Part shown: positions 1-20,733 of the stretch, piece by piece | Position numbering within the stretch: the stretch's first letter is position 1 | Layout: every line of letters begins with the position of its first letter | From: Macrostomum lignano | Lineage: Eukaryota | Assembly: GCA_002269645.1 (NCBI GenBank) | Contig: NIVC01005220.1 | Coordinates: 1-20,733 of the forward strand | Length of the DNA stretch: 20,733 nt | Direction: 5' to 3' | Notes under the pieces: model-generated | What the model was told of the DNA's origin: nothing | Seen by the model: only the letters and a program-made list of their open reading frames with translations | Databases searched by the model: none | Made by a program: the position numbers and the translations under genes

Positions 1-296
1 AAAAACTGTTTTGTTGAGCATGGATTTCTACCCTAGAATCCTGTAATTATTTTTATTACGCTGAATTGTAGTTCACTTAAAACATACACACAAACAACGC
101 GTCAGTTTTAGTTTTTGGAATCATAGAGTTTTAATTAGACTTTGGAATATTTAATGACTTAGATCATAGCGATTCAAACTAAGCCCTCAATAATAAAATC
201 ACTGAAATTTGCAGAATATGACAACGATCACTTAGCTAAGCTACTTAGTACTTTTTGTACTTTTTTGTCTTGATCGCCTGTCTGTCTTAAAATTGC

Positions 297-336
297 CCAG
301 CGATTAAAATTCGCTGGAGCTGGAGTGGCGACACTG
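297..336. mobile_element. Possible right terminus of a DNA transposon that begins upstream of the window
   Basis: TGGCGACACTG (326-336; reverse complement CAGTGTCGCCA) resembles CAGTGTTGCCA-type TIRs. It is preceded by the hairpin CCAGCGA-N7-TCGCTGG (297-317). The partner end is not visible. Confidence 0.3.
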
Positions 337-415
337 CACCCGATTTAAAATTCAAATCAATTACGCTTCTTTATTCTAGAAATTCAATTTCTTCCAAAGT
401 CTCTAAAAGTCTCTT

Positions 416-1478
416 GATCTTCTACTCTCCTCTCCCCTCTACTCTACTCTCCCCCCTCTACTCTACTTTCCTCCCCTTCCCCTCTACTCTACTCTCCTCT
501 TCCCTCCCCCTCTACTCTACTCTTCTCTCTCCTCCTCCTCTACTCTCCTCTCCCCCCTCTACTCTACTCTCTCCTCCTCCTCTACTCTCCTCTCCCCCCT
601 CTACTTTACTCTCCTCTACCCTCTACTCTACTCTCCCCTCCCCCTCTACTCTACTGTCCTCTCCCCCCTTACTCGACTCTCCTCTCCCCTCCCTTCTACT
701 CGACTCTCCTCTCCCCTCCCCTCTACTCTACTCTCCTCTTCCCTCCCCCTCTACTCTACTCTTCTCTCCCCTCCTCCTCTACTCTACTCTCCTCTCCCCC
801 CTCTACTTTACTCTCCTCTACCCTCTACTCTACTCTCCCCTCCCCCTCTACTCTACTGTCCTCTCCCCCCCTCTACTCGACTCTCCTCTCCCCTCCCCTT
901 CTACTCGACTCTCCTCTTCCCTCCCCCTCTACTCTACTCTCCTCTTCCCTCCCCCTCTACTCTACTCTTCTCTCCCCTCCTCCTCTACTGTCCTCTCCTC
1001 TCCCCCCTCTACTTTACTCTCCTCTACCCTCTACTCTACTCTCCCCTCCCCCTCTACTCTACTGTCCTCTCCCCCCCTCTACTCGACTCTCCTCTCCCCT
1101 CCCCCTCTACTCTACTCTCCTCTTCCCTCCCCCTCTACTCTACTCTCCTCTTCCCTCCCCTTCTACTCTACTCTCCTCTTCCCTCCCCCTCTACTCTACT
1201 CTCCTCTTCCCTCCCCTCTACTCTACTCTCTTCTCCCCCTCTACCTTACTCTCCTCTACCCTCTACTCTACTCTCCTCTCCCCTCTACTCTCTGCTCTCT
1301 CCTCTCCTCTCCATCTCTACTCTACGTTTCTACTCTCCTCTCTTCACCTCTCCTTCCCCCCTCTACTCCTCTACTCTATTCTCCTCTCCTCTCCTCAGCT
1401 CACCTCTCTACTCTCTCCACACTTCTCCTCTCTACTTTCCCCTCCTTATCTTTCCTCTTCCTTCTCTCCTCTCTCCGT
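416..1478 (+). repeat. Degenerate polypyrimidine satellite (CTCTA/CTCCT/CTCCC pentamer mix) with about 200-230 bp higher-order period
   Basis: Almost purely C/T with A in CTCTA units. The marker CTAC(T/C)TTACTCTCCTCTACC recurs at 601, 803, 1009 and 1241. ORF 414..1523 is a by-product. Confidence 0.95.
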
Positions 1479-1966
1479 ACTCTGGCCCGAAGTCATGCGC
1501 TAAGTTGTCAATCTAGCCCTTGACGGCTTGAAGTAAAAATTTTGCCGACGTCTAAGTTAATGAACAAACAAACTGAAACAAGCAAGGATCTATAATGACA
1601 CTTACCTTCTGCGTTGACTCGAAAATAGACGCCTAAGTAGAAAGTGTAGAAAAAGTGAGAGTTGAATTAGAAAATTAGAAAGAAGTAAGAAAATTATTTA
1701 GTAAGAGAGCGTAGGAAGGAAACTGAGTTTCAGTTGCAAGTGTTTAGAGTTTAGACTGGAGACTGCAGACTGCAGAGTTAGAGTTCGACGAGCTTTCCAA
1801 CCGGTTCAAATCGGTTTATACTGGACAGATTGCTTTGTCTGCTTTCTGGGAATTTTCCACTCCCCATTTTCCATTACTGTTGTTTACGGAAAGTGGGGGA
1901 AAGAAACTCCGTGCACTTAGAGGACAAGTGAGTTCGCATCTCCTCATCCAATGGCAGCTCGCTATT

Positions 1967-4914
1967 CTCTTCGGTGGCAGAGGAATAGAATAGAATAGAA
2001 TAGAATAGAATAGAATAGAATAGAATAGAATAGAATAGAATACAATAGAATAGAATAGAATAGAATAGAATAGAATAGAATAGAATAGAATAGAATAGAA
2101 TAGAATAGAATACAATAGAATAGAATAGAATAGAATAGAATAGAATAGAATAGAATAGAATAGAATAGAATACAATAGAATAGAATAGAATAGAATAGAA
2201 TAGAATAGAATAGAATAGAATAGAATAGAATAGAATAGAATAGAATAGAATAGAATAGAATACAATAGAATAGAATATTCTTGGATACTGCACTGTCTAA
2301 GAAGAATTATTTATTCTTTTTTCTCTTTAGACTGTTATTTTTGGCTGCTAAGAAATTATTTTACCTCGCGTACTTCAGCCGCACTACTAAGTAGTGCAAA
2401 AAGGATATGAAAGGTAGAATCGTGTTTTATGCGCATAGCGAATGACTTTGCGACTGTCAATACACATTACTGGACTGGTCACCAGAGGAAATGTGCTATA
2501 GCAAATTATCTATGCAACAAACATACTGCGCGAGAACACACTGCCCTTCCATGGGGGCGCTGTATTTGGGAGTGCTGTCTTTGGGTGGCGCTTGATCTCG
2601 CCACACTGATTTTGGGCGAGATTCTTACCAGCCCTCTGAGATCCGCCCTCTCTCCCCGGATTCACCCAGCAGCGCAAGCCGGTGGTGGGCAGCAGGAGGC
2701 CATCGGGCTGCAGAGGCCCCAAACCGGAGCCCCACAGAAGCTGCTGCTCTTCGGTGGCAGAGGAATAGAATAGAATAGAATAGAATAGAATAGAATAGAA
2801 TAGAATAGAATAGAATAGAATAGAATAGAATAGAATAGAATACAATAGAATAGAATATTCTTGGATACTGCACTGTCTAAGAAGAATTATTTATTCTTTT
2901 TTCTCTTTAGACTGTTATTTTTGGCTGCTAAGAAATTATTTTACCTCGCGTACTTCAGCCGCACTACTAAGTAGTGCAAAAAGGATATGAAAGGTAGAAT
3001 CGTGTTTTATGCGCATAGCGAATGACTTTGCGACTGTCAATACACATTACTGGACTGGTCACCAGAGGAAATGTGCTATAGCAAATTATCTATGCAACAA
3101 ACATACTGCGCGAGAACACACTGCCCTTCCATGGGGGCGCTGTATTTGGGAGTGCTGTCTTTGGGTGGCGCTTGATCTCGCCACACTGATTTTGGGCGAG
3201 ATTCTTACCAGCCCTCTGAGATCCGCCCTCTCTCCCCGGATCACCCAGCAGCGCAAGCCGGTGGTGGGCAGCAGGAGGCCATCGGGCTGCAGAGGCCCCA
3301 AACCGGAGCCCCACAGAAGCTGCTGCTCTTCGGTGGCAGAGGAATAGAATAGAATAGAATAGAATAGAATAGAATAGAATAGAATAGAATAGAATAGAAT
3401 AGAATAGAATAGAATACAATAGAATAGAATATTCTTGGATACTGCACTGTCTAAGAAGAATTATTTATTCTTTTTTCTCTTTAGACTGTTATTTTTGGCT
3501 GCTAAGAAATTATTTTACCTCGCGTACTTCAGCCGCACTACTAAGTAGTGCAAAAAGGATATGAAAGGTAGAATCGTGTTTTATGCGCATAGCGAATGAC
3601 TTTGCGACTGTCAATACACATTACTGGACTGGTCACCAGAGGAAATGTGCTATAGCAAATTATCTATGCAACAAACATACTGCGCGAGAACACACTGCCC
3701 TTCCATGGGGGCGCTGTATTTGGGAGTGCTGTCTTTGGGTGGCGCTTGATCTCGCCACACTGATTTTGGGCGAGATTCTTACCAGCCCTCTGAGATCCGC
3801 CCTCTCTCCCCGGATTCACCCAGCAGCGCAAGCCGGTGGTGGGCAGCAGGAGGCCATCGGGCTGCAGAGGCCCCAAACCGGAGCCCCACAGAAGCTGCTG
3901 CTCTTCGGTGGCAGAGGAATAGAATAGAATAGAATAGAATAGAATAGAATAGAATAGAATAGAATAGAATAGAATAGAATAGAATACAATAGAATAGAAT
4001 ATTCTTGGATACTGCACTGTCTAAGAAGAATTATTTATTCTTTTTTCTCTTTAGACTGTTATTTTTGGCTGCTAAGAAATTATTTTACCTCGCGTACTTC
4101 AGCCGCACTACTAAGTAGTGCAAAAAGGATATGAAAGGTAGAATCGTGTTTTATGCGCATAGCGAATGACTTTGCGACTGTCAATACACATTACTGGACT
4201 GGTCACCAGAGGAAATGTGCTATAGCAAATTATCTATGCAACAAACATACTGCGCGAGAACACACTGCCCTTCCATGGGGGCGCTGTATTTGGGAGTGCT
4301 GTCTTTGGGTGGCGCTTGATCTCGCCACACTGATTTTGGGCGAGATTCTTACCAGCCCTCTGAGATCCGCCCTCTCTCCCCGGACTCACCCAGCAGCGCA
4401 AGCCGGTGGTGGGCAGCAGGAGGCCATCGGGCTGCAGAGGCCCCAAACCGGAGCCCCACAGAAGCTGCTGCTCTTCGGTGGCAGAGGAATAGAATAGAAT
4501 AGAATAGAATAGAATAGAATAGAATAGAATAGAATAGAATAGAATAGAATAGAATAGAATAGAATACAATAGAATAGAATATTCTTGGATACTGCACTGT
4601 CTAAGAAGAATTATTTATTCTTTTTTCTCTTTAGACTGTTATTTTTGGCTGCTAAGAAATTATTTTACCTCGCGTACTTCAGCCGCACTACTAAGTAGTG
4701 CAAAAAGGATATGAAAGGTAGAATCGTGTTTTATGCGCATAGCGAATGACTTTGCGACTGTCAATACACATTACTGGACTGGTCACCAGAGGAAATGTGC
4801 TATAGCAAATTATCTATGCAACAAACATACTGCGCGAGAACACACTGCCCTTCCATGGGGGCGCTGTATTTGGGAGTGCTGTCTTTGGGTGGCGCTTGAT
4901 CTCGCCACACTGAT
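1967..4914. repeat. Head-to-tail tandem array, 4 full units plus 1 partial (units start at 1967, 2747, 3326, 3901, 4471), each about 485 bp unique plus a (GAATA)n tract
   Basis: Units start CTCTTCGGTGGCAGAG and appear identical by eye except for microsatellite length and one site (CCGGA-TT/T/CT-CACC). The last unit stops at CCACACTGAT (4914). Confidence 0.97.
1983..2277 (+). repeat. (GAATA)59 microsatellite with CAATA interruptions
   Basis: 295 nt. Shorter copies lie at 2763-2857 (19 units), 3342-3431 (18), 3917-4001 (17) and 4487-4581 (19). Each has CAATA as the third-from-last unit. Confidence 0.98.
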
Positions 4915-5211
4915 CCATTGGCACTGGAGTTATCGCAGCTATTCTTAACAAAATAACTCAGGTTGAAAGAGATCTTGCAGAGTGGATCGCGAATAATATA
5001 TATTTGCTACTTTTCCTCTGCAGTGCTTGAGGCTCTAGCTTAATCAGCTTTCCAGATATTCAATGGCGGAGATTCCGAAAAATTCTAATGTATTCAAATG
5101 GGGGAATTCGGGAAAATCAATCAGGAATTGCCAAGCTGTAGTAATAAACTCAGATTTGAGATTCTACAGATCATTAGAGCGTGCCAGTCGGTGTCTTCCG
5201 CAGAATGAAGG

Positions 5212-5452
5212 TTCTTGGGTCAGGATAGGAGATTCTTGGGTGAGGCTATTCTTGGGTCAGCATGGAAGATTCTTGGGTCAGGATAGGAGATTCTTGGGTG
5301 AGGCTATTCTTGGGTCAGCATGGAAGATTATTGGGTCAGGATAGGAGATTCTTGGGTGAGGCTATTCTTGGGTCAGCATGGAAGATTCTTGGGTCAGGAT
5401 AGGAGATTCTTGGGTGAGGCTATTCTTGGGTCAGCATGGAAGATTCTTGGGT
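5212..5452. repeat. 58-bp minisatellite, 4 copies plus 9 nt, each unit built from three TTCTTGGGT sub-repeats
   Basis: Unit TTCTTGGGT-CAGGATAGGAGA-TTCTTGGGT-GAGGCTA-TTCTTGGGT-CAGCATGGAAGA starts at 5212, 5270, 5328 (one C>A change) and 5386. Confidence 0.96.
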
Positions 5453-5745
5453 ACTGACACTTCGATGACATGTTTTATCAGTTTGAAGAATACCTTGCAC
5501 GGCTTTAGACTCAGTTTTCGAGCTGGTATCTAAGCACAGTCTCATTCAAGCTGTAGTTAAGCCAGTATTATCTTCACTTCAGCAGCGCATACAACTTATC
5601 CGATTTCAGTGGCGTCCTGGTTCATTTTGCCCCTACTGAGCGGTGGAATCTCCATTGCCCTGTTCTACTTTATCCAGGTCTTCATCCTTATACTAAGGTG
5701 ATTATGTAAAGCTTTAAAAATGTTTACTTTTAATTTGTGATTGTG

Positions 5746-5887
5746 TGCACAAGCGCGCACTAGCAGAGGCGCACACTGGCAGAGGCGCGCACCGGCACAA
5801 GAGCGCAGCAGCACAAGAGCGCACTGGCAGAGGCGCGCACTTTTGACACGCTGTAGCATAAGCGCGCTGTCTGTCTGTCTGTCTGTC
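5746..5887. repeat. GC-rich short direct repeats (GCAC(A)CTGGCAGAGGCGC / GCACAAGAGCGC) followed by a (TGTC)5 microsatellite
   Basis: Three GCAGAGGCGC and two GCACAAGAGCGCA copies at 5750-5840, then TGTC x5 at 5868-5887. Confidence 0.8.
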
Positions 5888-6383
5888 AGACGGCATGTCT
5901 GAGAGAAACCCTACAAACTGAAACACACAGGGAAGGCAGAAACAAGTATTTGCAGAATGCGAGTAAAAACAGACGCCAGCCTATAAATTGGTCCATAAAA
6001 TATTTCTTTATATTGTTTGTCACAGATAAGACGCCCAAGCTAATTACAAAAAAACAGCCGCAAAAAAGATTAAGCTGAAAATTGTCTGCCCAACCAAATT
6101 TAAAAACTGTTAAAAGACCAACAATTAAAGTAATAAAGTTGAAGAGAAAAAATACAATAGTAGGCACTATCTACTGCTATAGGTAAAATTAAACGAGGCA
6201 CTGATAAGAAAACGATAAAAAATATTTTACGAGCGTACTACCAAAGCGAGAGAAAAGTGAGGGATGGAAAAATAACAGATAAAATTGAAAAAGTCCATAA
6301 ACAGACCGACACCGCAGATAATAGTTAAACAGCTACAACTAGCTACTTAAGGACAGTAGTGCAAGCGCATGCTAGTGCAGTTT

Positions 6384-7877
6384 TTAAATAATCGACGAAT
6401 TCAGCCGGAAATTCGGCTCCGAGTTCAGCTGCTGGTGACCAGACAGTGTGGCGTCGAATTCGCCCTCGTAATCTTCGTCATCGTTATCCACTTTGACATC
6501 AAGATCGAGGTCGTCCTCGGATTTCGGATCGGCGGAGGCCTGCAGGTTAGGGGTGGCGACCGAGTTTTTGAAAGGCCATTTGAGGACAGGGAGATGATGA
6601 TAAATGAGGTCATTCAAGGATGAGGAAATATATGCCATGAAAGGTCGATATTTAGGGACACGGACAGGGGTCATGTAGGACAAGACAAGGGGTTATTTAG
6701 GGACATGAGTATTGGTCATTTAAGGTCACAAACATCATGACGGTATCACATGTTTAGTTGCACGCATATAAAGTGGTGAGTCATACATTAACATGGGTTG
6801 ATAAAATTTCCCAGCTCACCGATCGATTATAGCCTAGCCGGGAGTCGGTCTCGCCGTCTCGACTATCGTCGTTGCCCCCAGCCAGCGATGCGGCTAAACA
6901 AGCGGCCACATCGAAGGCGGTTGTAGCGGCAGCAGCGTTAGCAGCAGTCCTACTACCCATAGTATTGCTGCCTAACACAGCAGCGCCGGTAGTATTCGCC
7001 AGTGGCAAATAAATTTTTCTAGCCACCACCGTCTGCTTCTGCTGCTGCTGCTGGCTGTCAGAGCCGGTCGCTCCCGATGCCGGGTATCGCCGACGGCCGG
7101 AACGGGCGCGCAGCTGCGGCTCCCCTGCACTCAGGCGTCTCTGCGCGAGAGATAAGAATAGGAAAGGGGTCAAATGAGGACAATAATTCTAAGCAGAGGT
7201 CATTTCAGGACAAAAATCAACCCTGGGGTCAGTTGAGGACAAAAGTCTACCCAGGGGTCATTTGAGGACAGAATCTATCTGGAGGTCATTTGAGGACAAA
7301 CTAATATACGTAAAGATCATTTGAGGGCAAACATCTACCGTGGGGTCATTGAAGACAGAGGTTATTTGGGGCAAAAAAAGTGCGCAGGGGTCAACTGTCC
7401 TTACCTGGCCAACAGTTGTGACGGCGGCGGCGGAGGCGGCGCACCACCCCGTCGGAACAAGGCGGCAGCGTCAGCGCCTTTGACAGTCGCCGATTGGCCC
7501 GCCTGGGTCGGCCGCCGAGATCGCCAAGACTGGGCGACATGGACGACGCCTGCTCCGTCGAAGACTGCTGCGGCAGAGTTGTTGTTAAAGAGTCGGTGGC
7601 CATCGACGCGGCAGCGGCGACGGCGGCTGCGGCCGTGGCGTCGAGTAGAGGCTGGTCCAAGACAACGGCTGCCGACAGCTGCTGGCGAGAGCAGACGGCT
7701 CGACTCGAAGGCTCTGCTGGCAGGCGCGGCAACAGCGGCGCCGAATGATGAAGCGCAGTTTAGCCGAACGATCGCGCTCCGCAAGGACCTGCAATTGCAG
7801 CTGCATGCGAAGATTGGTCAGGTCCATCTGGAGGTCGTCCACACGATGCAGGCGTTTCTCGTAGTGCTGCCGAATCT
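6384..7877 (-). pseudogene. 3' exons of a multi-exon gene (coiled-coil, Ala/Gln-rich low-complexity and acidic tail); first visible exon frame-disrupted
   Basis: Exons 7877-7405 (acceptor TTTCGCCCCCAG, donor GTAAGG), 7140-6820 (acceptor CTCTCGCGCAG, donor GTGAGC, phase 0/0, open) and 6539-6384 (acceptor CTAACCTGCAG, ASADPKSEDDLDLDVKVDNDDEDYEGEF...stop). The coiled-coil frame (IRQHYEKRLHRVDDLQMDLTNLRMQL) hits stops at 7587 and about 7471. No family recognised. Confidence 0.55.
7166..7392. repeat. Intronic 27-30 bp degenerate minisatellite with core GGGGTCA-NNN-GAGGACA
   Basis: Cores at about 7166, 7196, 7225, 7254, 7282, 7312 and 7342. The same family occurs at 6608-6730 and 7938-8096, i.e. 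in each intron or upstream flank of the 6384-7877 gene. Confidence 0.85.
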
Positions 7878-8231
7878 CTGGGGGCGAAAGAAATGACAAG
7901 AGACTGTTAGGCGGCAAACAAGGACACAGGACTTCTAGAGGTTAAAGGACACAAAAGGTCTCTTAGAGGTCGAATGAGAACACAGAACTATAAGGGTAAA
8001 ATGAGGACACAGGACTGTTAGGGGTCAAATGAGGACACGGGACTGTTGAGGGTCAATTGAGGACACGGAGCTGTTATGGGTCAAACTAGGACACGCGGGG
8101 ACTGTTGTTGTGATAAGTTTTTGCATCATGTAGCAAACAGACCATGGCACATTTGCACTAATGCACCATATCTAGACCAGCAGTATCTGAAATAGAAGCA
8201 AAAGCCATTTATAAGATAATATACATGTAGG

Positions 8232-8523
8232 TCAGTGAAGCAAATATCTAAAATTGTTAACAGAAGTATAAAAGAAAAATGAACAAGAAAAAATGGTGCT
8301 CAGTTAGCCGATTCTAAAAGTGAATCGTGGATCCCCTGAGCCACGAAGAGGCCGAACACCGTTCAGGGGGTTAATCCATAGTTCACTTTGCAGAGCAAAA
8401 CAAATTCCACAGCACAGTAAACAGTGCACAGCGGTCTTTTGCAGCATTGAACTAAGGATCAATCCCGCCACTAAGAGCGGGAAGCCACAGCAAGAAATGC
8501 AAAGCGGCCAGCTTTTTGAAAGC
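8232..8523 (-). repeat. 292-bp direct repeat, copy 1 (identical to 12212-12503), strongly structured
   Basis: Base-by-base comparison shows no difference at an offset of 3980. The copy begins 68 nt after the SET stop codon on the minus strand. Confidence 0.97.
8294..8512 (-). ncRNA. Candidate structured RNA or 3'UTR element, at least 7 consecutive hairpins ending GCACCA then T6
   Basis: Stems GCCGC/GTGGC, TCCCGCT/GGCGGGA, ATTGA/TCAAT, CCGC..GCAC/GTGC..GTGG, TTTGC/GCAAA, TGGAT..CCCCTGA/TCAGGGG..ATCCA and CGATTC/GAATCG. G-U pairs on the minus strand become A-C mismatches on the plus strand. I recognise no snRNA, 7SL or RNase P motifs. Confidence 0.45.
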
Positions 8524-8591
8524 CGATAAAATCTTATAGCGAACTCCCCATGCAACGGGGGCTGATGGTTTCAGAGAATAAACTTAGCCTT

Positions 8592-10553
8592 TCAGTCTTT
8601 AAGCCACGGATGCAGTCGAAGCACATCCGAGCGCCTTTCTCCATAATCGTAGAGTAGCTCCTCGCCTCGAGCAATGTCTCGAATGGCTTGGAAGACCAGA
8701 TGCGGTTTATTGTTTACATCAGCAACAATCGGCTTCAAGTTATTTCTTCGCCGGCTATGGTTAATGTACCGACCGACGTACTGGAAAGTGTTGGTTGCGT
8801 CGATGCAATAAGCTTGATCTCGCCAGGAAAAGAAAAACAAGAAGCAGCATGGCTTCCCTTGCTTTACAATATCTTCCTCCCGGGCGAGGCGTGCTTTTTG
8901 TCCTTGGATTAATTCTCCACCGTAAGTACAGACGACAGTGCCTTTTGGGAGGTCCGTACGGGCAAATGCCCCCAGACCCTCTGCGTCGACGCTACCGGCC
9001 TGAACCACGACGTTGCCGGTAGAAATCATTGTCTGTCGAACCACATCGGCCATAGTGAGTTGCCTCATAGACGCCATTTCGGTCGGCAGGGATCGCTCTG
9101 GACTCCCACGGCTAGCTCGGCCGTGAGGCGTCACGTGAAGGAGCGGCGTGCATGCTCCGTCCGGAGTTGTGATAGTGTCCGGGACTAGACGCTCGCGATT
9201 AGCTGCCATTGCAGGAGGGGCAACCGCAGCAGCGTGGCTATTTGAGTCCTCAGGCGAAGTCACAGTCGGCTCGAAAGGCGGATCATTGGACAGGCCATCT
9301 TTATTGGCTTCTCCTCTTTGGAGCCGAACGCTAAGGGGAACCTGACAGTGAAGAAAATGAAGAGGACAAATGATTCATAGTGGTAACGGCATACAAATGC
9401 AGATTAACCCCAACGCTTTAATCTTTGCATTGAATAAACATGCAACAAAATTGTTCCTAAGAACACTGTTTCACACAATAAACTGTGGACTTCATTTAGT
9501 TTGACCAACTTACTTCATTGGAGGTCGCCGGTACAGCGTCGGTAGATAAGGCGACGTCTATAGTTGCAGCAGCGGCAGACTCCGGGACCAGAAGCTCGCG
9601 ATTAGCTGCCATTGCAGGAGGGGCAACCGCAGCAGCGTGGCTATTTGAGTCCTCAGGCGAAGTCACAGTCGGCTCGAAAGGCGGATCATTGGACAGGCCA
9701 TCTTTATTGGCTTCTCCTCTTTGGAGCCGAACGCTAAGGGGAACCTGACAGTGAAGAAAAAAGTACATCATAATGGTTACAACATGCAATTAAAGATGAA
9801 CGTAACCCTTTGTTATTTTCATTAAACATACATGCAACCCAGCTGATGGTAAGATAATTGCTCTACACCATAAACCATGGGCCAGCATAAAAGACCCCAC
9901 CCCTTGTTGTTAATCCCTAATATTTCCTTTTGAGCAAAGTATCTAAAAGCTTTTATTTATTCATTTTTCACTTTCATCTTCTCAAATTTACCAAACATTC
10001 AACTTTTTAAGAAAAGTTGCGACCTGACCTGACCCGCGACCTGATGCTTTCAAGGTTACAGGCCGCAGCGTTTTAACAACAAAAAACCATGGACACAAAT
10101 TTTAGTTTAACACACCTCATTGGAGGTCGCCATTTCAGCGTCGGTAGCTAAGTCCGCGTCCATTGTTATAGCGGCGGCAGATTCCGGCAGGCTTTCAAGC
10201 GGCAAGGCTGGATTAAGATTTAGTTGAGGCCGGATGCCGTAAAAGGCCAACAACCGCAGGCCCTCAATTCTGTCATATGCCCTTGCCCTCGCATCAGCTA
10301 CGGCTGCACGGCCGACAACAAATGCTTCGCCGAAATGGCACAGCCGCATGTGTTGTCTCATATTAGAGGCGGCAAATGAGCTGCACAGCTGGCAAAGCTT
10401 TAAATCTCTTTTGCCATGCCAACGTTTGTAGAGAATGTAGGCTTCGACTCGATCGTAGTTTGCTGTATGCTTGCTTCGAGCGTGTCGAAGGAGGGTGGCG
10501 GACCGATTGGTGGAATAGTCACACATCGGGCAAATAAACTGGTCAGGGTCCAT
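8592..10553 (-). CDS. SETD8: Double C2H2 zinc finger plus PR-Set7/SETD8(KMT5A)-like histone H4K20 methyltransferase, 3 exons, about 472 aa
   Basis: Exons 10553(ATG)-10116, 9744-9514 and 9341-8592; GT-AG introns, both phase 0; 1419 nt in one open frame. SET motifs GLGAFA, VVCTYGGEL, YCIDAT, GRYINHS, GEELLYDYG and the SET8-diagnostic C-terminal HPWLK are present. N-terminal fingers are CPMC..HARSKH and CQLC..HMRLCH. The symbol is family-level, not an orthology claim. The frame is open upstream to an acceptor at 10631, so the start may be further 5'. Confidence 0.9.
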
Positions 10554-10819
10554 ATTGAATTGATTCAAGTTTTCAACGTAAACGTTTAGAGTAAAATTTA
10601 GTTCTCGATAAAACGTGTCGCGCAAACTTTCTGAAAATGAGGAAAAATCAAAATGAAACCTTTAACTACGGTGAAAGATGAATGAACTAGGCATCTTGGT
10701 AATAGGTACTTTACAATGCACTCTTAAAGACTGTCAGACTGAAAGCAAAGAAGGCATGTTCCGCTCGCTCGTAGTCTCAGGACAATAATAAAAGGCAGCT
10801 GAACAGATCAAATCAAATG

Positions 10820-10825
10820 TTTATT
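10820..10825 (-). terminator. Polyadenylation signal AATAAA of the zinc-finger gene
   Basis: AATAAA on the minus strand about 90 nt after the TAA at 10916, followed by T/G-rich sequence. Confidence 0.55.
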
Positions 10826-10915
10826 TGAAAGGTTGGGCGATACAACGGACTTGATAACGCATTACAGTCCCGAATTTCTGCATAGTAGCATTAGGTTGCC
10901 AGTCACACTGAAGTT

Positions 10916-11533
10916 TTAAAGCAAATCGAGTAGTGAAACGGAATTCGAAATTGTAGGATTTGCATTTTGTTGCAACGAAACGCTGGGAGAAGCTGGATTA
11001 AAAAAGCCATTGAAATCATTGTCTAACGTAGTTACACTACAACTGTGGCAGGGGCATGTACAATGGCTATCAGGGCAATTGAAAATGTTTGAACGTAAAA
11101 CACTTGGACCGGAGAGCTGTGAATCGGCACACTTTTCGGAGGGGTTCCTGGCGGCTAGTGATTGCAGCTTAGAAATTAAAACTTCAGCGTTTTCTTTAGC
11201 CTCGTCTAAGTTATAGGTAGATTGCGAATTTCCATTTGTCTTAGATTGCTTTCCATGTTTTACCCTAACATGGCTTGGTAAATTCGAAGTGATAACACTG
11301 CAAACAGGACACTGATAGAGGTAACCCGATTCGGTTCGCTTCTTTGCCTTTAAAAGTCCAAAAAGGCGGATTGTGGCATCAATTTGCTCTTCAGTGGCAT
11401 CAGGGTGCTTTCGATTGCAATGTACCTTGAAACCAGATGCGCGTCCTGTCCAAGCATTGCAGATCAAACAGGAAATCTGCGTATGAACCTGCACCATGTG
11501 AGACATTGTCCCGCGGGTGACATTCAAGAGCAT
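10916..11533 (-). CDS. Stand-alone double C2H2 zinc-finger protein with Cys/His-rich C-terminal patch (205 aa ORF)
   Basis: CLICNAWTGRASGFKVHCNRKH and CPVCSVITSNLPSHVRVKH, then CPDSHCTCPCHSC. It has its own stop and a downstream AATAAA. The start codon is uncertain (ATG at 11533 or a downstream Met). Confidence 0.8.
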   Translation of the reverse strand: MLLNVTRGTMSHMVQVHTQISCLICNAWTGRASGFKVHCNRKHPDATEEQIDATIRLFGLLKAKKRTESGYLYQCPVCSVITSNLPSHVRVKHGKQSKTNGNSQSTYNLDEAKENAEVLISKLQSLAARNPSEKCADSQLSGPSVLRSNIFNCPDSHCTCPCHSCSVTTLDNDFNGFFNPASPSVSLQQNANPTISNSVSLLDLL

Positions 11534-12211
11534 CGGGAAAACGTTGTGGGCTTATTATTATACTGCTTCCAGGGAGGTTAGGCAAATTAAGTCTTAATTT
11601 TTGTATTCTAAGACAATGACGGAGAGGAAATGCTTTAGAGTATAAAAAATTCTGAATCTCACATCTGAATCTCCTATCCTCTGATCGGAACCAGGTCTAT
11701 CTTCCAACATGAACATCCTTTCCTCTCAACTGAAACCCTCGAGTCCGAGTCAATAAGGCTACAGGCCAAGCAGGGTGCCATTAGTTAGTGTGGGCAGTTA
11801 CATTTTCAATCTCCCCAGCCAAGCCTAAAGTGCTGCTATAAATGGGATAATGAGTGCATGGCGGGATGGGTCACTGCTATTGCTTATGGTTAACACGTAA
11901 CAAAAGTAAAAGACAAAAATGTGTATATCACGATTACTAGTTCCACTTTTATTATACTTTCGCGCTATCTTTGAAGCAGTATGCAAATATACTATTGGCA
12001 TAGCGGGCGTCTAAACGCAGGCTAACATAAGAGAACTGACAAATTGCAGTGAGTGTCAAAGTGTAGTACAACGAAAAGGGACAAAAGTAAGACGCATATG
12101 CGCCTCTCGCTGCAACGACAGGCGACTGCATATAAATGCATGAAATATTAAGTAATACAAACGAGAGAATAAAACACATTCAAGAAAGTTGCTCGTAGTT
12201 ATAAATTTCAA

Positions 12212-12503
12212 TCAGTGAAGCAAATATCTAAAATTGTTAACAGAAGTATAAAAGAAAAATGAACAAGAAAAAATGGTGCTCAGTTAGCCGATTCTAAAAG
12301 TGAATCGTGGATCCCCTGAGCCACGAAGAGGCCGAACACCGTTCAGGGGGTTAATCCATAGTTCACTTTGCAGAGCAAAACAAATTCCACAGCACAGTAA
12401 ACAGTGCACAGCGGTCTTTTGCAGCATTGAACTAAGGATCAATCCCGCCACTAAGAGCGGGAAGCCACAGCAAGAAATGCAAAGCGGCCAGCTTTTTGAA
12501 AGC
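12212..12503 (-). repeat. 292-bp direct repeat, copy 2 (structured core 12274-12492)
   Basis: Identical to 8232-8523. Begins 163 nt after the transposase stop. Confidence 0.97.
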
Positions 12504-12666
12504 TGAAATACTGCTTACTTTGGTAGGCTGTAAACTTTACAGTAAATTTCTAAGAGAAATCGGTATACGTTTATAAACTGGTTTAGAATTTCATGTAAAC
12601 AAGCTAGTTTACATCCGAAATATGATTATCCTATGGATAACAGTTTCAAGTAATCGAGTTTCGGAA

Positions 12667-15457
12667 TTAAATACTATCAATCCATTCTTCATCTGACTCA
12701 GACTGCTCACGACTTGATTCAACGTCTGAATGACTCGGGGCTTCAACGTCATCTGGCTGATTTACGTTGGTACCAGCGTCGTTTGGATGCTGCGCATCAG
12801 CAGCAGCAGCTTCAATGCTTGCGTCAATGTGATCAAAGCGAAGAGCTTGAAGTTGCTTTAAAATAGTCTGAAAGAGGCATCGAAACTGGGCTGGCAATCC
12901 AGGTTGATGATGGAGTGTTTCACAGTGCTGTTCAAGTTTAATTTGAACGTCACGCCACTCTTGCACAATAATGATCTTTTCCTCCGCTAGACGATTCAGC
13001 TTGTGATACAAGTCAACCACCCGTCGCTTGAACCTCTCAGACACATCGATCGAAAGACCGAAGTAGAAGTCTGACTGGAAGTCGCGAAGCTGAATCATAG
13101 TGGGCACGCGAAGGCCTGGCGGAAGCGAGCGGGCGGCCATTCGAATGTCTGCATTTAAAGCCGCAACCTTGCGTAGACATGCTCGATTTTCTTTTTGTCC
13201 ATCTGAGCAGCCACTCTGACGGATCCAATAGAATCGTTCCAAAGCAAGTGCCTTAAGCTTTGCGTAAGGTTCCCTGCTCAATGGAGAGTCGCTATTGGGA
13301 TTTATGGCTTCTGCATGCCATTGTTGAGCAAGATTTAAAATGGCTACCTCAGAGATTCCGGCAGGAATAGTTAATTTGTTGTTCCGCATCAAATCGCCAG
13401 CTTGTAGAAGCAATTGCTCCATTTCAGCTGAACAAGACGCGGCTGTGCGAGTTATTAGTTTTAATCGAGCAGAAAACCAATTGGAGGCGTACAACAACTG
13501 ATTAGCATTGAAGCAATGCAAAATGTAAGACATACAAGCACTTCTGCGATCGGACCGCATGTACTTTAAGCTTTTACCAAACGGTCGTAGTGCAGACCAA
13601 GCGCGCTCCGTATTCTCCCCGTCGCAAAGACCCGCTCCAGGAGTTACCCGCACGGAGTACTTTAGTTGGCATTGTCTCTCGTGGCCCAGCACATGAAAGG
13701 CGTTCACAGCGCACGTGACACTGTTAAGCTGTACACCAGATGCTGACACCATGGACTTGACACGATTGGAAATGCGACAACCTGATTTTAGGAAAAAGTT
13801 TTTAAATGAATAAATAATTGAGCTTCGTGTCGCAGTACGCATGCACGTACATAAGTAAGCACAAGCATAAGTAAGCACACACTATAAGTGTATAGTGTAA
13901 ATAAGTGCAGCATGATAGAAACACGATAAAAATCAACTCACCAACATCATAGATAAAAATGAGATCCTTTGAGACGGGCTGTGTCATTAGGTAATGACGA
14001 AGAGTCTGTTCTGGATAGCACAGGCCCTCACCAGCTGTAATAATGTTGCAACCTGTCAGAAGCCTGTTATGCCGGCAAAATAAGCCAAAGAAACCGTTGA
14101 CATCGTGCTTGCTGGCCCTGATCACGGGTTTTTCTGTTCCAGCCTTCCAGTTAGTGCAGCCTTCTGCAGACACTTGTGTCGTAGGAGGCGGTACAGTTGC
14201 TGGTTCTACATGAATAAGCGGTGACGGCAATGAGCGTTCAGAATCTGGCACTAGACGTTGCTTCGAACCCATACTTTGTAGTCTTCGCCATCCAAATAGA
14301 GCATCAGCACAAACTACAGACTTCCGACTTGAATTTTGGTCAGGACACAAAAGACAACTAGCAGGCCAGCTTGCTGAACACCTCTGCAACTCTCGAAACC
14401 GCAGTAGGACTCCATTACGCTGCAATCTCTGATACACTCGATCGGCTAAACCAGGGTTCCAGCGACCTTGTCCTACGACGGAGCCTTTGAAAAGACAGGT
14501 AATTGCACGAGACAGTGGCAGTTGACCGTCAAAGCACAAGGAGTCAAGAGTTGATAGAAAGCTAATTGAAAAAAATGTTAACAATTCGCCAACGCGTGAC
14601 TCGCTTCCAGGAAAGTATCCTTTTGCTAGCATGGCATCAACTTTATCACAGGATTGGCACGTATAAATTCTGGCGCAAACAATTCCGTTGATGTCAATAA
14701 TCTGAATTTCGGATGATGTTGTATACTCAGAAGACAAGCTTGATTCGCTACAGCAGAATAGAGAGACAGGCTCTTCTTCTTGAATGTCTTCAAACATTAG
14801 CGATTGAGCCTAGGAAAAAGGGTTAAATTTTGTATGCGGTGTTATAAAAATATTATTCCGTACTAAGGCTATTAGCATTCTAAATACTTTTGTTTCACGT
14901 CAAATTTAATACAGCGTTATACTGCCAAATAGGCGTCATTGTTTTCTTCACAGTAAACTAATATCCTTAGAAATTGCAATTTAGATTTTAAAACAACTTA
15001 CATTCCACTGGAGGAACTTGTGAGCAGCAAAATTTCCATGCGTTATCTTTTTACAATCACTGCAGACATCGTACTGACAATGAACACATCGGAAAACTCC
15101 AGGCTGCATGTCGCAACGAACACAGCATTTTAACTCGAATGACTGTTTATAACCGGCAGTGTAACTTTCCACAATGGCCGTGTAGTCTTCCCATTCCGTG
15201 AATTTAGGCGGCTGTTCAAACTTATTACTAATCTGTTCAGGCATAGAGTCATGGTTTCCTGCACCCAGATCTTGTGAAAGACTGCCGCCAGTGACTGTGG
15301 AACACGAGGAAGCCGTGGCAATCGATGTAGTACTTTCCAATGCATTAGGCGCATTAGACGTTCGCAATATCCTTGGCCTTCCGCGTTGGCCAGTCATCAG
15401 TACTACTTCAGATTGTCTTTTTCTCGATTTCGCATTTAGTTTTCTTGACGAAATCAT
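12667..15457 (-). CDS. KDZ (Kyakuja-Dileera-Zisupton) family transposase with N-terminal CxC-type cysteine cluster, 3 exons, about 812 aa
   Basis: Exons 15457-15002 (donor GTAAGT), 14809-13942 (acceptor TTTTTCCTAG, donor GTGAGT) and 13781-12667 (acceptor AAATCAG); 2439 nt in frame. KDZ motifs VCADALF, GFFGLFCRH, IYDVGC (formed by splicing), NAFHVLGHERQC and GAGLCDGENTERAWS are present. The cysteine cluster reads CVRC..FRCVHC..CSDC..H..H..W and CQSC..GYFP. Confidence 0.92.
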
Positions 15458-16793
15458 TGCTGAAATTCGTGAGGATCATTCTGAATTGTATATTACATCA
15501 TATGCTAAGCTCAAAAGGTGTTTATCTATATCAGTGTCTTTTTAGAGCAGGTGCTTAGCCATCTGCTCAGCCACCTGCAAGGCAACCTGCTCAGGCATTG
15601 CAGCTCAGGCAGTGGCTGGCTTGGAGCATCAGCTGATTTGATTAAAGTTGATTAAAATCTAGCAGATTTATAGTCTATAATTTGTTATCCATAGCCATAT
15701 TGCATTGAGTTGTGTTTATAAGTATATAATAAGCAGCTTAAATTATTATTTGGTGTAATTGGGATGCTTTGGAATATGTTTTCTAAATTTTCCACTTCAT
15801 CTTGTATTCTTGATTGTTGTATTTTCTTACAAGTCTTTTCTGGGTCCTTATGTCTATGAAAAAGGGTAGGCCTACCTGCATATAGTGGCTCTTTGATTTT
15901 AATTTATAAATTTTAGATGTATACATTTTTTGTTTTAATAGTTGCAGTTTAATGAGCCACAACACAAATGCCCACAAAGTTTTTATCAGTTTTATTTTAT
16001 TTGGAATATTCCAATAAATTATAATATATAAATATATATTATTTATCCTAACAAAAAGAATTCTATATGAATATTATATTTACATATTTATAGTCACAGA
16101 ATCATGCACTGAAAAAGTTCTTCTTAGGCTTGATAACAATATAGAAACATATAGAAACTAATAGATAAAAGTCTTAAATAACATTTATCATTTTTGATAT
16201 TCTGTTTTTTAATTTGACTAAGAACATCTAAAGAAATCATACTTTTTTATTAGAATATTTAAACTTATTTAAAGGCAACAAAGGTACAAAAGAATAGGCA
16301 GCCTTATGGTCATAACATTATGGTTTTAACTTTTTTCTGTCAATTCACTAACTTTGAATTACCAATAGATTAAAAATTTAATAGATTATATGGCCATTAA
16401 TGTTTATATCTAATTATGCAAATACTATAATTTTATCTATAGTTTGTTTCAATCTTCCAAAGCTTTTTATTTGTTTTCAAAAGGTACACAAAGTTAATGA
16501 TGTCTTTTGCTTAAAAAAATGTTCAATTTTTTATAAAAATAGCTTTTTGCCAACTGATATTATACTAATCCAACATTTTACCATTCATTTTTGGCATTTG
16601 TTATTTGTCCAATGACTGGACAAATAGCCTTTTTGCTATTTGTCTGCTTAAATTGCTAACACAAGTATCTGTTTGTTTTATGATGAATATTCTAAATTTT
16701 TAAGACCTTTTCTTGTATATTAATTAATATTTTCTTATATACTGTTAGCAAAGCAATGTATTCAATTTGGCATAATTTTGTATATAAGACACA

Positions 16794-16955
16794 CTAGTTC
16801 CCAGTGAGCTCCGCGAAACCCACAAACCCAAGGACACGCGCGAAGCGCGTGTCCTTGGGTTTGTGGGGTGAGCGGAGCGAACGCGCGAGGCACAAAGTGC
16901 CGAGCATGAGGAACAAACAGCCAGCCAATGCGCGAAGCGCATTGGGTGGTCTGGC
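16794..16955 (-). mobile_element. Helitron-type 3' terminus (non-autonomous); 5' end not determined
   Basis: A perfect 23-bp stem 16819-16841/16845-16867 is extended by GCTCCGC/GCGGAGC (16808-16878). On the minus strand it is followed after 10 nt by CTAG and then T (16797-16793), matching the canonical hairpin-CTRR|T signature. Confidence 0.65.
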
Positions 16956-19135
16956 TTGTGACGAATATAATAATATGAGACGTGTGCATCGAAAAAATGA
17001 CAAGAAAAATCTCACAAAAACTGCTGTAACTTCAAAACTACAAGTGCGAATTTCACAAGTGAGGTGTCATTTTAAAGAGAAGAATCTGATCTATTTAACG
17101 AGTATAGTTTTGTATGGATTCACTGCGGAGAAAAGGAACAGGCTTCAGTTGAAATGTTTGTCTTAAGATTATGTCTTTACAAAAGTGCATTTCCTCATGC
17201 ACATTAAAACTCGAGCTAAAAATGTTCGAGGGTTATAGGTGCGCCTTACTAAGATGCATAACATTATTGGGTTGTTTTTTTCAATTGTATCAAAAAGTTG
17301 GCACTTTGGTTGCAAAAAATGCAAAAATTGAAAATGTACTTTTACAGTTTTTTGCATTTTTTTCTATACTGCTAATAGTTAAGCATACATACTATGCACC
17401 AATTGATGCGCAATTCAAAGATACACAAGTGTGGAAGTTTTCAATTCCTAAACATTTGAAATCAGAAAGTTATCGACGAAAGACTAAAAATCATGATCTC
17501 AAACTGATTTGAGGAAAAGTGCTCATTATAATTTTTGGAATATGGAAGAAACAATTCAACGCCGTCATCTAATTCCAAACTAACTGTACTTTAAGGTACT
17601 GCGATGATTTTTTTATTGAAAGAGCGAAACCTGTTTAAATATTTGAAAAAATGGAAAAAAAGTACCTTTTTTCATAGAAATACACTCTTTTGACTGCTTA
17701 ATCCGATTTCCAACAACAAAATAGTTGCTTTCCTGCTGGTGCAAACCGTTATTAGGGTGAATTTTCAAAATTGCATACTGTGCCAAAAGTAAACTGAAGC
17801 TTAATATTTATAAACATTAGAAACGGGACCACTAATGGGTATTTTACTTTGGTTACTTACTATGGACTAAACTGGCACTGGCAGAGACAGATTTGAGAGA
17901 AACTAATTGCTCCATTGTATTTGTATTTGGCTCCAGCGTTACAAATTACAATAGCTATTTCGGGGTCTAACCGGCTAAGTTATCAAAAAAGCTAGATACC
18001 AATCACCAGTTTCATCATCAGCTATACCTACCACGATTTTATAGTCACATGCAACAGTAATACCCTCCTTTAAAAGTTTTCAATATCTAAAATGATGTGT
18101 TAAATTTTATAAAATTTCATAAACAGTGAAATTTTAGCTGTTTACGTGCTGGTGGTTTGAACGTAGCTACTTTGTGCGAAAATACACTGTCATTAATACC
18201 GTACCTATTATTGTATTTATTGTATTGAAAGTTGATGTGTAAATTGTACTTTTCTATTTTTTTGTCATTCGTTATCGCACTCGGGCCGGCCTGCCTGCCT
18301 TGTGGGGTGTGGTGGCCTTGGCCACTTTCTCCCCCTTCTGCTAGGATCCAAAGCAAGCTTTCAAGTGTACATTTAATATTATCGATCGATTATTTAAAAC
18401 AAGCCTCTAGTGGCTGGTGTTGAGAGTGAGTGGCCTTGAGTGTACGCGAAAGCAAGAGGAAGCCCATGGGCGGACTATATGAACCTTCCTTTAGTGGAAA
18501 GTTGGGCCTTGTGCATTGGATAGTGTACGCTACACAAGACAGAAGGTAAAGAGAAAGAGAACGACAGGCTAGCCAATAGCGATAGCATGTGCTTCTTTCT
18601 CTCCAGTCCACTATGGTAGGGGGGGGGAGGGGGGTGTCATACGGCCCAACTCTAACCCCCATACCCAAAACAGCGTACATGTAGAATAAGAAGGGATTGG
18701 GTCCAGATAAGTCTTCCCAAATGTACATGTATGTACAAAGACAAACACAGACAAGAAAAATGGCTCTAAAAACCATTGTTATTGTTACACTGTGTGTCTA
18801 TTTTTATTAACTTGACTTTGACTTGTCTTTAGGCCCTACTCTAGCATGGTCAAGGATAATTACTGTTACTTCATACCTAATTTACAATTAATTGCATAAG
18901 ATTAAGAAGGAATAATACAATCGAGGTCGAACCCATGATCACTTGACCCACCCACCCATGATCACTTCTGATTCTGACCTACATGTATCTACTATATCCT
19001 GCCAGTTTCTCCAGTTTTATGGGTCTTGGTGTCGGTGATTCGAGCAATTCCATTACATTTTATCGGTGCAGTGCGTCTATTAATGCTTAGCTACTTGTAT
19101 ATGTGTTGCAGAACTTATGCTCGTAGTTTCCCTTC

Positions 19136-19914
19136 TAGGGATGTTGACCCCGGGAGTGCTCCCCGGGGAGCTTGTCGGGGAATACTCTCCGGGGAATTTA
19201 ACCGGGGACCCTGGGGAGAAAAAATATGAAAAAATGCATTTGTAACTTAATTTTTGCCATTAAAATAAGAAACTGATTCACAGAAAGCTGATTGAAACTC
19301 TGTCTATGCTCTTTTACCGCATAATTGCTTATTTCAATGCATTACATGTATTTGAAACACAACACACGTTTGATTGTTTTTTCACTAATAAGTCATTCAA
19401 TCAAGCAAATTGCACGTAGAAAAGAAACCCGTCAGGAAAAAGAAGCCTTACTGACTAGTGACTGCTGTGTTGGTCTGCGTTGACGGCTTGACGCAGGCGC
19501 AGCGCTGCGTCATGCGTCAGGCACTGACGCATAGGGGGTGTCATACATATACTCCCTATTAGACAAGGACAAAATGGTGATTTACATATATATGCAAGAA
19601 ATAAAATTCCGATTATAAAAACAGTCTCATTCATTAATTATCCTCTCACGAGCGTAGCTGTTTAGCATGCATTCCAACAAATGCACTTTTCCGATAAAGG
19701 TGCGCGCACGATTTCGTGATGCCACATTGTCAAATACAGTTTAAAAAAAACATTGTTTAAAATTTTTACCCCTGCGCCTTGAACATGTAGTACAAAGCTT
19801 AAATCAAAGTTTAAAAAATTCCACTTACAATCTAAGTGATCCGCCGTTTTAACTTATTTTTTCTTTTCACCGGGGTCCCCGATAAGATAATTCCCTGGGG
19901 AATCGACATCCCTA
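19136..19914. mobile_element. hAT-superfamily non-autonomous element (MITE-like, about 780 bp)
   Basis: TIR TAGGGATGTTGA (19136-19147) versus TAGGGATGTCGA (reverse complement of 19903-19914) is Ac-like (TAGGGATG). The 8-bp TSD TTCCCTTC lies at 19128-19135 and 19916-19923, with one extra A at 19915. Inverted CCGGGG(A/T) subterminal repeats occur at both ends. Confidence 0.85.
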
Positions 19915-20733
19915 ATTCCCTTCCTATAAATCATTTGACGTTAGAGACATTTTACAACTCTCGCCCTACTTTATCTATTAGGCTAACTTTATGTATGACA
20001 CGACGCAAAATATTAGGAGCATCAGCGTTAATAATGCCTTGAAAGTCTTTAAATAATCGATACAACACTAGGTATTATAAAATTCCAACCCGCAAAGCTC
20101 ACTGGGGCGAAAAGACTTTGTCTTCATTAACTAGTATAACAACATAATAAACTAATAATCAAGATACAAATAAGAAGTCTTTAAAGTCTAGGAATATTTA
20201 TCCTTGTAGTTTCTATGAAATAGATTTTTTAGCATTATTAATTTAATTGGACAAATGACAAAATGTCTATTTTGTCCAGTATTAACTAGATGAATAAGAA
20301 AGCATGGTCATAATCCAGTAACTGGACAAATGACAATTGCTTTATTTTTTAGATTGTATGCTAGTATAGGCCTTATATTATACATAAAGAACATTTGGCA
20401 GAAAAATTAGTAGCAAGGCAATGGTGAGCAAAATATTGACTTTTTACTATTTTCCAAATATGTCTATCTTATCTGGCTGGAATGAGCCACCTGACATAGG
20501 CCCTACTCACTATATATTCCACTCTTGACTCCAAGGTGCATATAGGAAAAAGATTATTTAAGTGTAAGGTGTGCGATGAAAAAATACAAAGTGGGACTGT
20601 AGCCTAAGAGCAATGCTGTTACCTAGCTATTTAAGAAGTAGTACTTCAACCAACCTGCTGTCTAGCAACAAATGAGATCTACTGTCACTGACATATGACA
20701 AGCATATCTAAGATGCTTAAATTTAAAAAAATT

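Follow-up and report, generated by a model that had tools for sequence, protein, structure and literature searches.

We analysed a window of 20,733 nucleotides, positions 1 to 20,733 of contig NIVC01005220.1 from the flatworm Macrostomum lignano (assembly GCA_002269645.1). On its minus strand lie a transposase gene of the KDZ (Kyakuja-Dileera-Zisupton) superfamily, a stand-alone zinc-finger gene (Z1), and a gene that joins zinc fingers to a SET domain of the SET8/KMT5A type (hereafter ZnF-SET). Quite probably, the window is a copy of a large (more than 24 kb), recently amplified and transcribed KDZ DNA transposon. This element would carry Z1 and the zinc-finger-SET8 gene, followed by a gene for a small acidic protein. 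Good support exists for the central part of this statement, namely that a KDZ element has a ZnF-SET8 cargo. It rests on the co-occurrence of the genes in every copy, on their linkage across diverged families and on their co-transcription. An animal KDZ element with such a cargo had been proposed in the initial annotation of this DNA. The copies, the second family, the transcription and the 5' borders described below support that proposal.

The KDZ gene, its neighbours and their copies

The KDZ gene has three exons on the minus strand, separated by canonical introns of 192 nt (GTAAGT..AG) and 160 nt (GTGAGT..AG). Exon 1 (15002-15457) starts with the ATG at 15457 and encodes a basic N-terminus and, with a weak match, a B-box-like zinc finger. 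Its donor GTAAGT follows position 15002. Exon 2 (13942-14809) contains a putative CxC-like cysteine cluster and the first half of the core, ending in ...IFIYDVG. Exon 3 (12667-13781) contains the second half, C..H..H..C..DGE..ER..W, and a C-terminal coiled and acidic tail, with the stop at 12667. The spliced product has 812 amino acids and matches exactly an annotated M. lignano protein (P0166/PAA45899.1). The Pfam family KDZ (PF18758) gives one unbroken match across both exon junctions, covering profile positions 4-212 of 217 (E = 4e-34; 118.7 bits against a curated cut-off of 26.6). The conserved core (C..H, GE, YD..C, H..H..C, DGE..ER..W) was checked and is present. Likewise, of the columns that are nearly invariant in an alignment of 150 proteins, the window protein has all 20. 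The first sequence of this alignment is identical to it over residues 182-696. The CxC1 score of the N-terminus is 15.5 bits, under the cut-off of 26.9, and UniProt names a KDZ relative of the second family (see below) a CxC2 domain protein. The window gene is a member of the KDZ transposase superfamily, and its open reading frame (ORF) is intact.

Z1 (10916-11533, minus strand) is an ORF of 205 amino acids with two zinc fingers and its own stop codon. Z1 and the finger module of ZnF-SET are paralogous (BLASTP against exon A, E = 3e-5). The ZnF-SET gene consists of exons A (10116-10630), B' (9514-9744) and B (8592-9341), all on the minus strand. Exon A opens at an acceptor (10631/10630) that is probably a spliced-leader trans-splice site. 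It has its ATG at 10553 and encodes two C2H2-type fingers. The first of them is a classic C2H2 finger, with CTCF fingers as top PDB matches (E = 1.6e-5). Exon B' adds 77 codons in frame. It arose through a tandem duplication of 403 bp, whose signature is the 99% identity between 9178-9357 and 9581-9760. The 5' part of this extra exon copies the SET exon, and its 3' part is 80% like the end of exon A. An annotated model of 409 amino acids, from another copy, omits it. Exon B encodes a linker and the complete SET domain, and ends in ...HPWLKD*. This exon model reproduces exactly the annotated ZnF-SET proteins of 486 and 497 amino acids, and the 409-amino-acid model was also rebuilt. The annotated coding sequence of the 497-amino-acid protein, which is 5'-partial, begins at the first full codon past the acceptor of exon A. 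The initial annotation had placed an intact KDZ gene, a zinc-finger gene and a ZnF-SET gene, co-oriented, within 7 kb. The gene models confirm this, and the repeated unit itself is larger.

A HMMER search with the spliced KDZ protein found one protein 97% identical to it, plus two further relatives at 46% and 33%. A metagenome scan with KDZ gave no relative. The window and its near-identical copies form family 1. It comprises six distinct KDZ proteins (at least 90% identical) on nine contigs of the same M. lignano assembly, with gene names Mlig004599g2 to g29 and Mlig022522g1. A SET gene adjoins KDZ in 9/9 annotated contigs, according to the accession numbers of the neighbouring proteins. Six loci of this family were read directly: L081, L087, L088, L089, L090 and L092. 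In L081 and L087-L090, KDZ is always followed, ~2 kb on, by an annotated SET gene of 409-497 amino acids (5/5), and the gene for a 98-amino-acid protein comes next in four of these five. Alignments of the loci with the window extend over 11-18 kb, at 99.3-99.9% identity. In the five loci compared, the protein encoded by the ZnF-SET exons is 100% identical. Z1 is 100% conserved in four of the five, with a frameshift in L087. Some copies are frameshifted or shortened.

If these genes travel together, as the initial annotation supposed, they should co-occur at several loci with shared boundaries and target-site duplications (TSDs). The co-occurrence was found, with linkage in at least three different 5' contexts. 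As for the boundaries, sharp 5' borders exist in both families, and no TSD was found. The border of family 1 opens with CAGAGCATATTCC (CAGAGC), and the DNA upstream of it is unrelated between L081 and L087. A third 5' context is that of L090, where homology to other copies begins 23 bp past the window end. L081 and L092 are clearly in the same context as the window. Homology between copies with different 5' flanks spans the SET gene.

The linkage seen in a second family is the strongest evidence. The KDZ protein of family 2 (P0171) is 47% identical to that of the window and is present on five contigs. The two families have no alignable DNA in common except a satellite block. In L083 and L084, the family-2 ZnF-SET gene stands directly after KDZ. 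Compared with the window, its finger module is 35% identical and its SET domain 35-38%. This SET domain keeps the motifs FYGG, GRYINHS, ELLYDYGER and FPWLN. A Z1-like gene is found in L082 and L083. It is 31% identical and has the motif HP..T.EQI in common with Z1. The gene order is KDZ, ZnF-SET, Z1 in family 2 and KDZ, Z1, ZnF-SET in family 1. At three family-2 loci, unrelated 5' flanks reach a sharp border opening with CAGTTTATGGCC (CAGTTT). Since the KDZ-SET linkage is common to two deeply diverged families, it is old. A third KDZ gene (L086, 33% identical) lies between host genes, with no SET or zinc-finger gene within 10 kb.

In the M. lignano annotation, transcriptional units from RNA-seq were clustered at 95% identity, given one name prefix and cut into genes at trans-splice or poly(A) sites (PMC5730564). 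The genes for KDZ, ZnF-SET and the 98-amino-acid protein have the prefix Mlig004599 in common, so they belong to one transcriptional-unit cluster. Because this RNA-based annotation covers them, the element is transcribed. The three genes probably derive from one precursor processed by trans-splicing. This precursor would be transcribed from a promoter upstream of KDZ. Two processes would then split it into mRNAs: 3'-end formation within the repeated 3' modules, and trans-splicing of a spliced leader to the acceptor of exon A (10630). Two UniProt models of 1347 amino acids, P0177/P0180 (A0A1I8J3S7, A0A1I8J1A4), fuse KDZ, ZnF-SET and the 98-amino-acid ORF. They splice the KDZ sequence ...DVESS onto the exon A acceptor. 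These fused models may be prediction artefacts or rare read-through products.

The 98-amino-acid protein (Mlig004599g5/g28) is acidic and of low complexity, with no recognisable domain. Its gene lies at 6384-6960 on the minus strand, with exons at ~6960-6814 and 6548-6384, where P0178 was placed by tblastn.

The SET domain and its predicted activity

The Pfam SET family (PF00856) matches the C-terminal domain of ZnF-SET with E = 3e-20. The closest solved relative is human KMT5A/SETD8 (6e-27), with KMT5A matches spanning 6e-27 to 2e-22. The next structures other than KMT5A are a Cryptosporidium SET protein (5e-17) and EZH2 (3e-13). The initial annotation had listed seven residues equivalent to those of human SETD8. 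The list holds, because each of them (Y245, N298, H299, Y334, Y336, H347 and W349) is conserved in the alignment to that protein. The equivalents of E259, C270 and D338 (as E) are likewise kept in the window. The protein ends in ...HPWLK, a C-terminal flanking motif of KMT5A type. In family 2, the equivalent of H347 is F and the other six cited residues are kept.

Judging from identity, tree and multi-copy status, the window ZnF-SET is not the canonical PR-Set7/KMT5A orthologue. The orthologues of the canonical type share 55-68% identity with human KMT5A; for the window domain, the identity to any of them is 34-51%. When metagenomes were scanned with the SET domain, 80 loci came out; they served as canonical comparators, and none of them has a KDZ or zinc-finger neighbour. 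The canonical genes of these loci split the SET domain near residue 65; the window SET domain is in one exon. A bootstrapped neighbour-joining tree was made with 21 SET8-type domains. Its canonical orthologues were taken from other genomes, and the host's own KMT5A is not in the set. The canonical clade, which includes human, leaves out the element-borne SET domains, that of the window among them, in 70% of the bootstraps. The two element-borne domains, from families 1 and 2, group together in 67%. This support is moderate, and long-branch attraction is possible. A single-copy, true PR-Set7 orthologue was the opposite case considered in the initial annotation. What we found is a gene on at least nine contigs whose SET domain falls outside the canonical clade.

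From the conserved residues and the architecture, we infer a zinc-finger-targeted monomethylation of lysine, probably H4K20, at the DNA of the element. The zinc fingers would direct the SET domain to specific DNA sites, and sequences of the element itself are the most plausible ones. At these sites, the enzyme would monomethylate a lysine, with H4K20 as the best guess from the conserved SET8 residues. The methylation might modulate the silencing or the repair of the element. A more complete scenario can be drawn, and we consider it unlikely. It consists of a giant KDZ element, active at present in a regenerating flatworm, with one trans-spliced, operon-like transcript for a DNA-binding zinc-finger protein and a SET8-type enzyme tethered by zinc fingers. 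The latter would write H4K20me1 on the element's own copies, perhaps on a ~159-bp array, thereby steering silencing, replication timing or break repair.

It is possible, although on the whole somewhat unlikely, that the SET domain is no longer an H4K20 methyltransferase. It could modify another protein substrate, such as the transposase or a repair factor, or serve as a binding module only. Human KMT5A has non-histone substrates, and PDB molecule names call it N-lysine methyltransferase. Moreover, the window domain is only ~38-45% identical to human SETD8, its GxG motif reads EGLGA instead of GKGRG, and family 2 presents F in place of H347. On the other hand, the NH pair, Y245, Y334, Y336 and W349 of the S-adenosylmethionine pocket or catalysis are kept in both families. 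The same is true for the C-terminal PWL(K/N), and the E259, C270 and D338(E) equivalents kept in the window also argue for a retained function.

The repeated unit and the alternative explanations

The initial annotation noticed an identical 3' element behind KDZ and ZnF-SET. It proved to be a 292-bp direct repeat with sharp borders and 100% identity between its two copies, at 12212-12503 and 8232-8523 (minus strand). The repeat begins 164 nt past the KDZ stop and 69 nt past the SET stop. Every family-1 copy has it at the same two positions and, in the loci read, only there. There is no target duplication at either window copy, the end of the element has no inverted partner in the window, and no match was found in genome or viral collections. 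As a short interspersed element (SINE) or known RNA it was rejected, with no tRNA and no Rfam family at the curated threshold.

Family 2 shows a comparable arrangement. In L083, direct repeats of 553 bp, 100% identical, bracket the ZnF-SET cassette, and the KDZ coding sequence ends, with its last 47 nt, inside the first of them. In L082, one repeat copy is present and the cassette is missing, a difference from L083 of exactly 1833 bp. No similarity was found between the 292-bp and the 553-bp repeats. A 254-bp portion of the family-2 repeat is found again after the Z1-like gene, and for this reason the 3' modules look like re-used gene ends. The bracketing repeats expose the SET cassette to loss by recombination, and L082 has lost it. 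The 292-bp element is better read as a direct repeat bracketing the SET cassette than as a marker of transposon ends.

A sub-threshold fold similar to the hepatitis delta virus (HDV) ribozyme is present in the 292-bp repeat, at 8296-8369 and 12276-12349 on the minus strand (21 bits with the model RF02682, whose gathering score is 44). The motifs L3 (CCUCUxCGUGG) and J4/2 (GGCUAA) conform to the consensus. Pairings for P1, P2, P3 and P4 can be proposed, although a P2 helix is also possible in 5% of shuffled sequences. The P1.1 GG is missing, and the family-2 repeat has no counterpart. With this score and an incomplete double pseudoknot, we did not accept the repeat as an HDV-like ribozyme.

The repeated unit takes in ~5 kb of DNA upstream of KDZ and over 10 kb beyond the KDZ stop, and exceeds 24 kb in the window copy. 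Its upstream stretch holds a ~159-bp satellite array. Its downstream part holds minisatellites, the 98-amino-acid gene and a satellite with a ~575-bp unit, each with a (GAATA)n run. The latter (1983-4914) is common to all copies, with varying length, and therefore lies inside the unit. The region upstream of the KDZ gene (15458-16797, minus strand) contains a probable promoter at ~15500-15650 and is then AT-rich. Homology to other copies resumes at 20135-20733. The 3.3 kb in between (16798-20134) is a non-coding insertion with an ACTAG duplication and no Pfam domain. It is present in the window, L081 and L092; L087-L090 are without it and display a clean empty site. A palindrome with arms of 34 nt (16808-16878) stands at its start, and the insertion seems to be a non-autonomous element nested in one KDZ copy.

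All coding content found in 4800-20733 is on the minus strand, between ~6.4 and 15.5 kb. Six-frame Pfam scans of 4800-8600 and 15800-20733 gave no credible further protein domain. Positions 1-4800, which lie outside the scanned stretches, are CT-rich low complexity and satellite, and 421-1473 is a CT-rich low-complexity array with periods of 28 and 206 bp. On the plus strand, 12 copies of a 28-29-bp motif, GGGGTCAWWTGAGGACA, form three arrays at 6572-8093 (0.09 copies expected by chance). We considered this motif as a subterminal repeat and rejected it; it was seen on one side only, downstream of the SET gene. Being confined to one side, it is taken as a minisatellite.

The ~159-bp array, with ~230 bp ahead of it, lies beyond the high end of the window. 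It was located at 2159-3827 in L081, 5216-7162 in L087 and 1896-7322 in L082. Downstream of the family-2 copies is a satellite with a 387-bp unit. In L082 (16363-22480) an inverted copy of this satellite comes after it, with a palindromic junction at ~20200-20450. An error of assembly could have produced this arrangement, or two elements could lie tail to tail.

Several results weigh against a KDZ transposon with this cargo. No TSD, terminal inverted repeat (TIR) or empty site was found for the KDZ element. The window has no inverted repeat of at least 40 nt, and a sensitive blastn of the flanks gave nothing. The best short inverted pair, a 15-mer containing a palindrome, was considered as a TIR and judged to be due to chance. 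The 3' terminus does not appear within the 10-kb flanks of the loci, including those centred on the 98-amino-acid and SET genes, which are filled with satellite. Between families 1 and 2, the ~159-bp array and the preceding ~230 bp are 92-93% identical, with all else unalignable. Because only this block aligns, the 5' border could be that of a unit bearing the satellite and not that of the KDZ element. The likeness of the block could stem from concerted evolution, from exchange between the families or from a common protein-binding platform. Furthermore, the M. lignano assembly is redundant owing to hidden polyploidy, with duplicated blocks of 180-312 Mb (PMC5730564), so some of the nine contigs are the same insertion. 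The G+C content at third codon positions is 0.41 in KDZ and Z1 versus 0.52-0.55 in ZnF-SET. Finally, a SET domain is present in none of the 46 longest KDZ relatives.

These genes might instead form a multi-copy host cluster. It would consist of a domesticated KDZ-derived gene and a lineage-specific ZnF-SET8 paralogue, arranged as a trans-spliced operon in a satellite-rich region. Segmental duplication and polyploidy would have multiplied this region, and gene conversion would have kept its copies uniform. Such a cluster would fit with the lack of a TIR, TSD or empty site, and with the same satellite arrays flanking every copy. It would also fit with the 100% identity of the ZnF-SET protein among copies, the duplicated 180-312 Mb of the assembly and the expression as a single transcriptional unit. 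Nevertheless, we consider it quite unlikely. The same gene set occurs in two families at 47% (KDZ) and 35% (SET) protein identity, and each family presents several unrelated 5' flanks with a sharp border starting with CAG. The numbering from g1 to g29 points to ~10 near-identical copies, more than ploidy explains. In addition, the KDZ ORF is intact with all its conserved residues, and the frameshifted or truncated copies resemble decaying transposons.

The hardly credible reading is that of chance neighbours, a KDZ copy that landed by an unrelated SET8-like gene, with the 292-bp element as a SINE-like or MITE-like (miniature inverted-repeat transposable element) repeat inserted twice; for practical purposes, the co-occurrence data refute it. 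The sharp borders and full identity of the 292-bp element, the different composition of KDZ and SET, and the independent expansion of KMT5A-like genes in other invertebrates (65 in Hydractinia, 61 in sea urchin) would agree with it. However, the adjacency is 9/9 and recurs in an anciently diverged second family. In the loci read, these two sites are the only ones that the 292-bp element occupies. It shows no target duplication, and neither a tRNA nor an Rfam family matches it at the curated threshold. At the equivalent sites of family 2 stands an unrelated repeat, whose first copy overlaps the end of the KDZ coding sequence (47 nt). A KDZ transposon that carries the ZnF-SET gene is the reading that we prefer.

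Comparison with known systems

Transposons are mostly seen as targets of host chromatin marking, and the elements that bring epigenetic enzymes are few. Our literature search found no pairing of KDZ or Zisupton with SET8/KMT5A, nor with Macrostomum. Among KDZ elements, those of fungi carry TET/JBP genes (Kojima 2025, PMC12730594). Like the window, the fungal Kyakuja and Dileera have a PF18758 transposase and a separate neighbouring gene for an enzyme of epigenetic marks. Their cargo is a DNA-base dioxygenase, whereas that of the flatworm is a zinc-finger-fused SET8 lysine methyltransferase in an animal host. The flatworm element is also far larger than the fungal TET/JBP elements, and it contains internal satellite arrays. 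Kyakuja has 7-bp TSDs, ends 5'-CA..TG-3' and no TIRs, and Zisupton has 8-bp TSDs. The sharp 5' borders of both flatworm families begin with 5'-CAG, which agrees with the 5' end CA of Kyakuja.

In Cryptococcus neoformans, KDZ1 is 10.9 kb long, holds three genes, has TIRs of 236 bp and a TSD of 8 bp, and was directly seen to transpose (PMC11343200). The "gigantic" KDZ1-KDZ3 of this fungus resemble the flatworm element as large, multi-gene KDZ elements (a transposase and two genes) with several near-identical copies. The extra genes of KDZ1 are without a known domain, whereas those of the flatworm encode zinc fingers and a zinc-finger SET protein. The mobility of KDZ1 was seen, and that of the flatworm element is deduced from its copies.

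Like the flatworm element, fish Zisupton is an animal KDZ with an extra enzymatic domain related to chromatin or SUMO. It was reportedly described by Böhne and co-workers in 2012 as an animal element of the KDZ superfamily with a Ulp1 domain. Unlike the flatworm arrangement, the Ulp1 domain of Zisupton is fused to the transposase, the cysteine clusters are of CxC7 type and there is no SET domain. We found Ulp1 in nine of the 46 longest KDZ relatives scanned.

Fusions between transposon and chromatin domains, SET included, are widespread (10.1101/2021.11.30.470311). HarbingerS and MuDR families are described as having taken up SET methyltransferase genes in Phytophthora (Kojima & Jurka 2014, as cited in PMC12730594). 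As in the flatworm, a DNA transposon there would have captured a SET lysine methyltransferase, in other transposase superfamilies and other hosts. SETMAR is also a fusion of SET and transposase, but it is a domesticated host gene rather than the cargo of a mobile element. VANC of the Arabidopsis VANDAL elements offers a functional analogy only. This accessory protein, which the transposon encodes, recognises the sequence of its own transposon and alters the chromatin state there; it is not a SET enzyme. None of these systems, TET/JBP in fungal KDZ, SET in oomycete Harbinger/MuDR or VANC in plants, is a SET8-type writer in an animal. If the H4K20me1 self-marking suggested above were true, the flatworm element would be the first animal transposon shown to carry a sequence-targeted histone writer that serves the element itself. 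Its copies are young and are transcribed, and the host is a laboratory model that offers RNA interference, transgenesis and inbred lines, so what an element gains from carrying a histone methyltransferase becomes testable. In addition, M. lignano models named "B box-type domain-containing protein" and "hypothetical protein" can be assigned to a transposon family.

Expansions of KMT5A-like genes are known in Hydractinia (65 genes), Hydra (24) and sea urchin (61), and some of the expanded proteins hold a DNA_BRE_C tyrosine recombinase or an integrase zinc finger (PMC10368294, S8 table). These animals and the flatworm have in common a lineage-specific multiplication of divergent SETD8-type domains. 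In the former, the proteins are long and mostly have the SET domain at the N-terminus, a KDZ partner is not reported, and the authors see these proteins as embryonic chromatin regulators. The flatworm element suggests that at least some of these invertebrate expansions may be transposon cargo, not host regulators.

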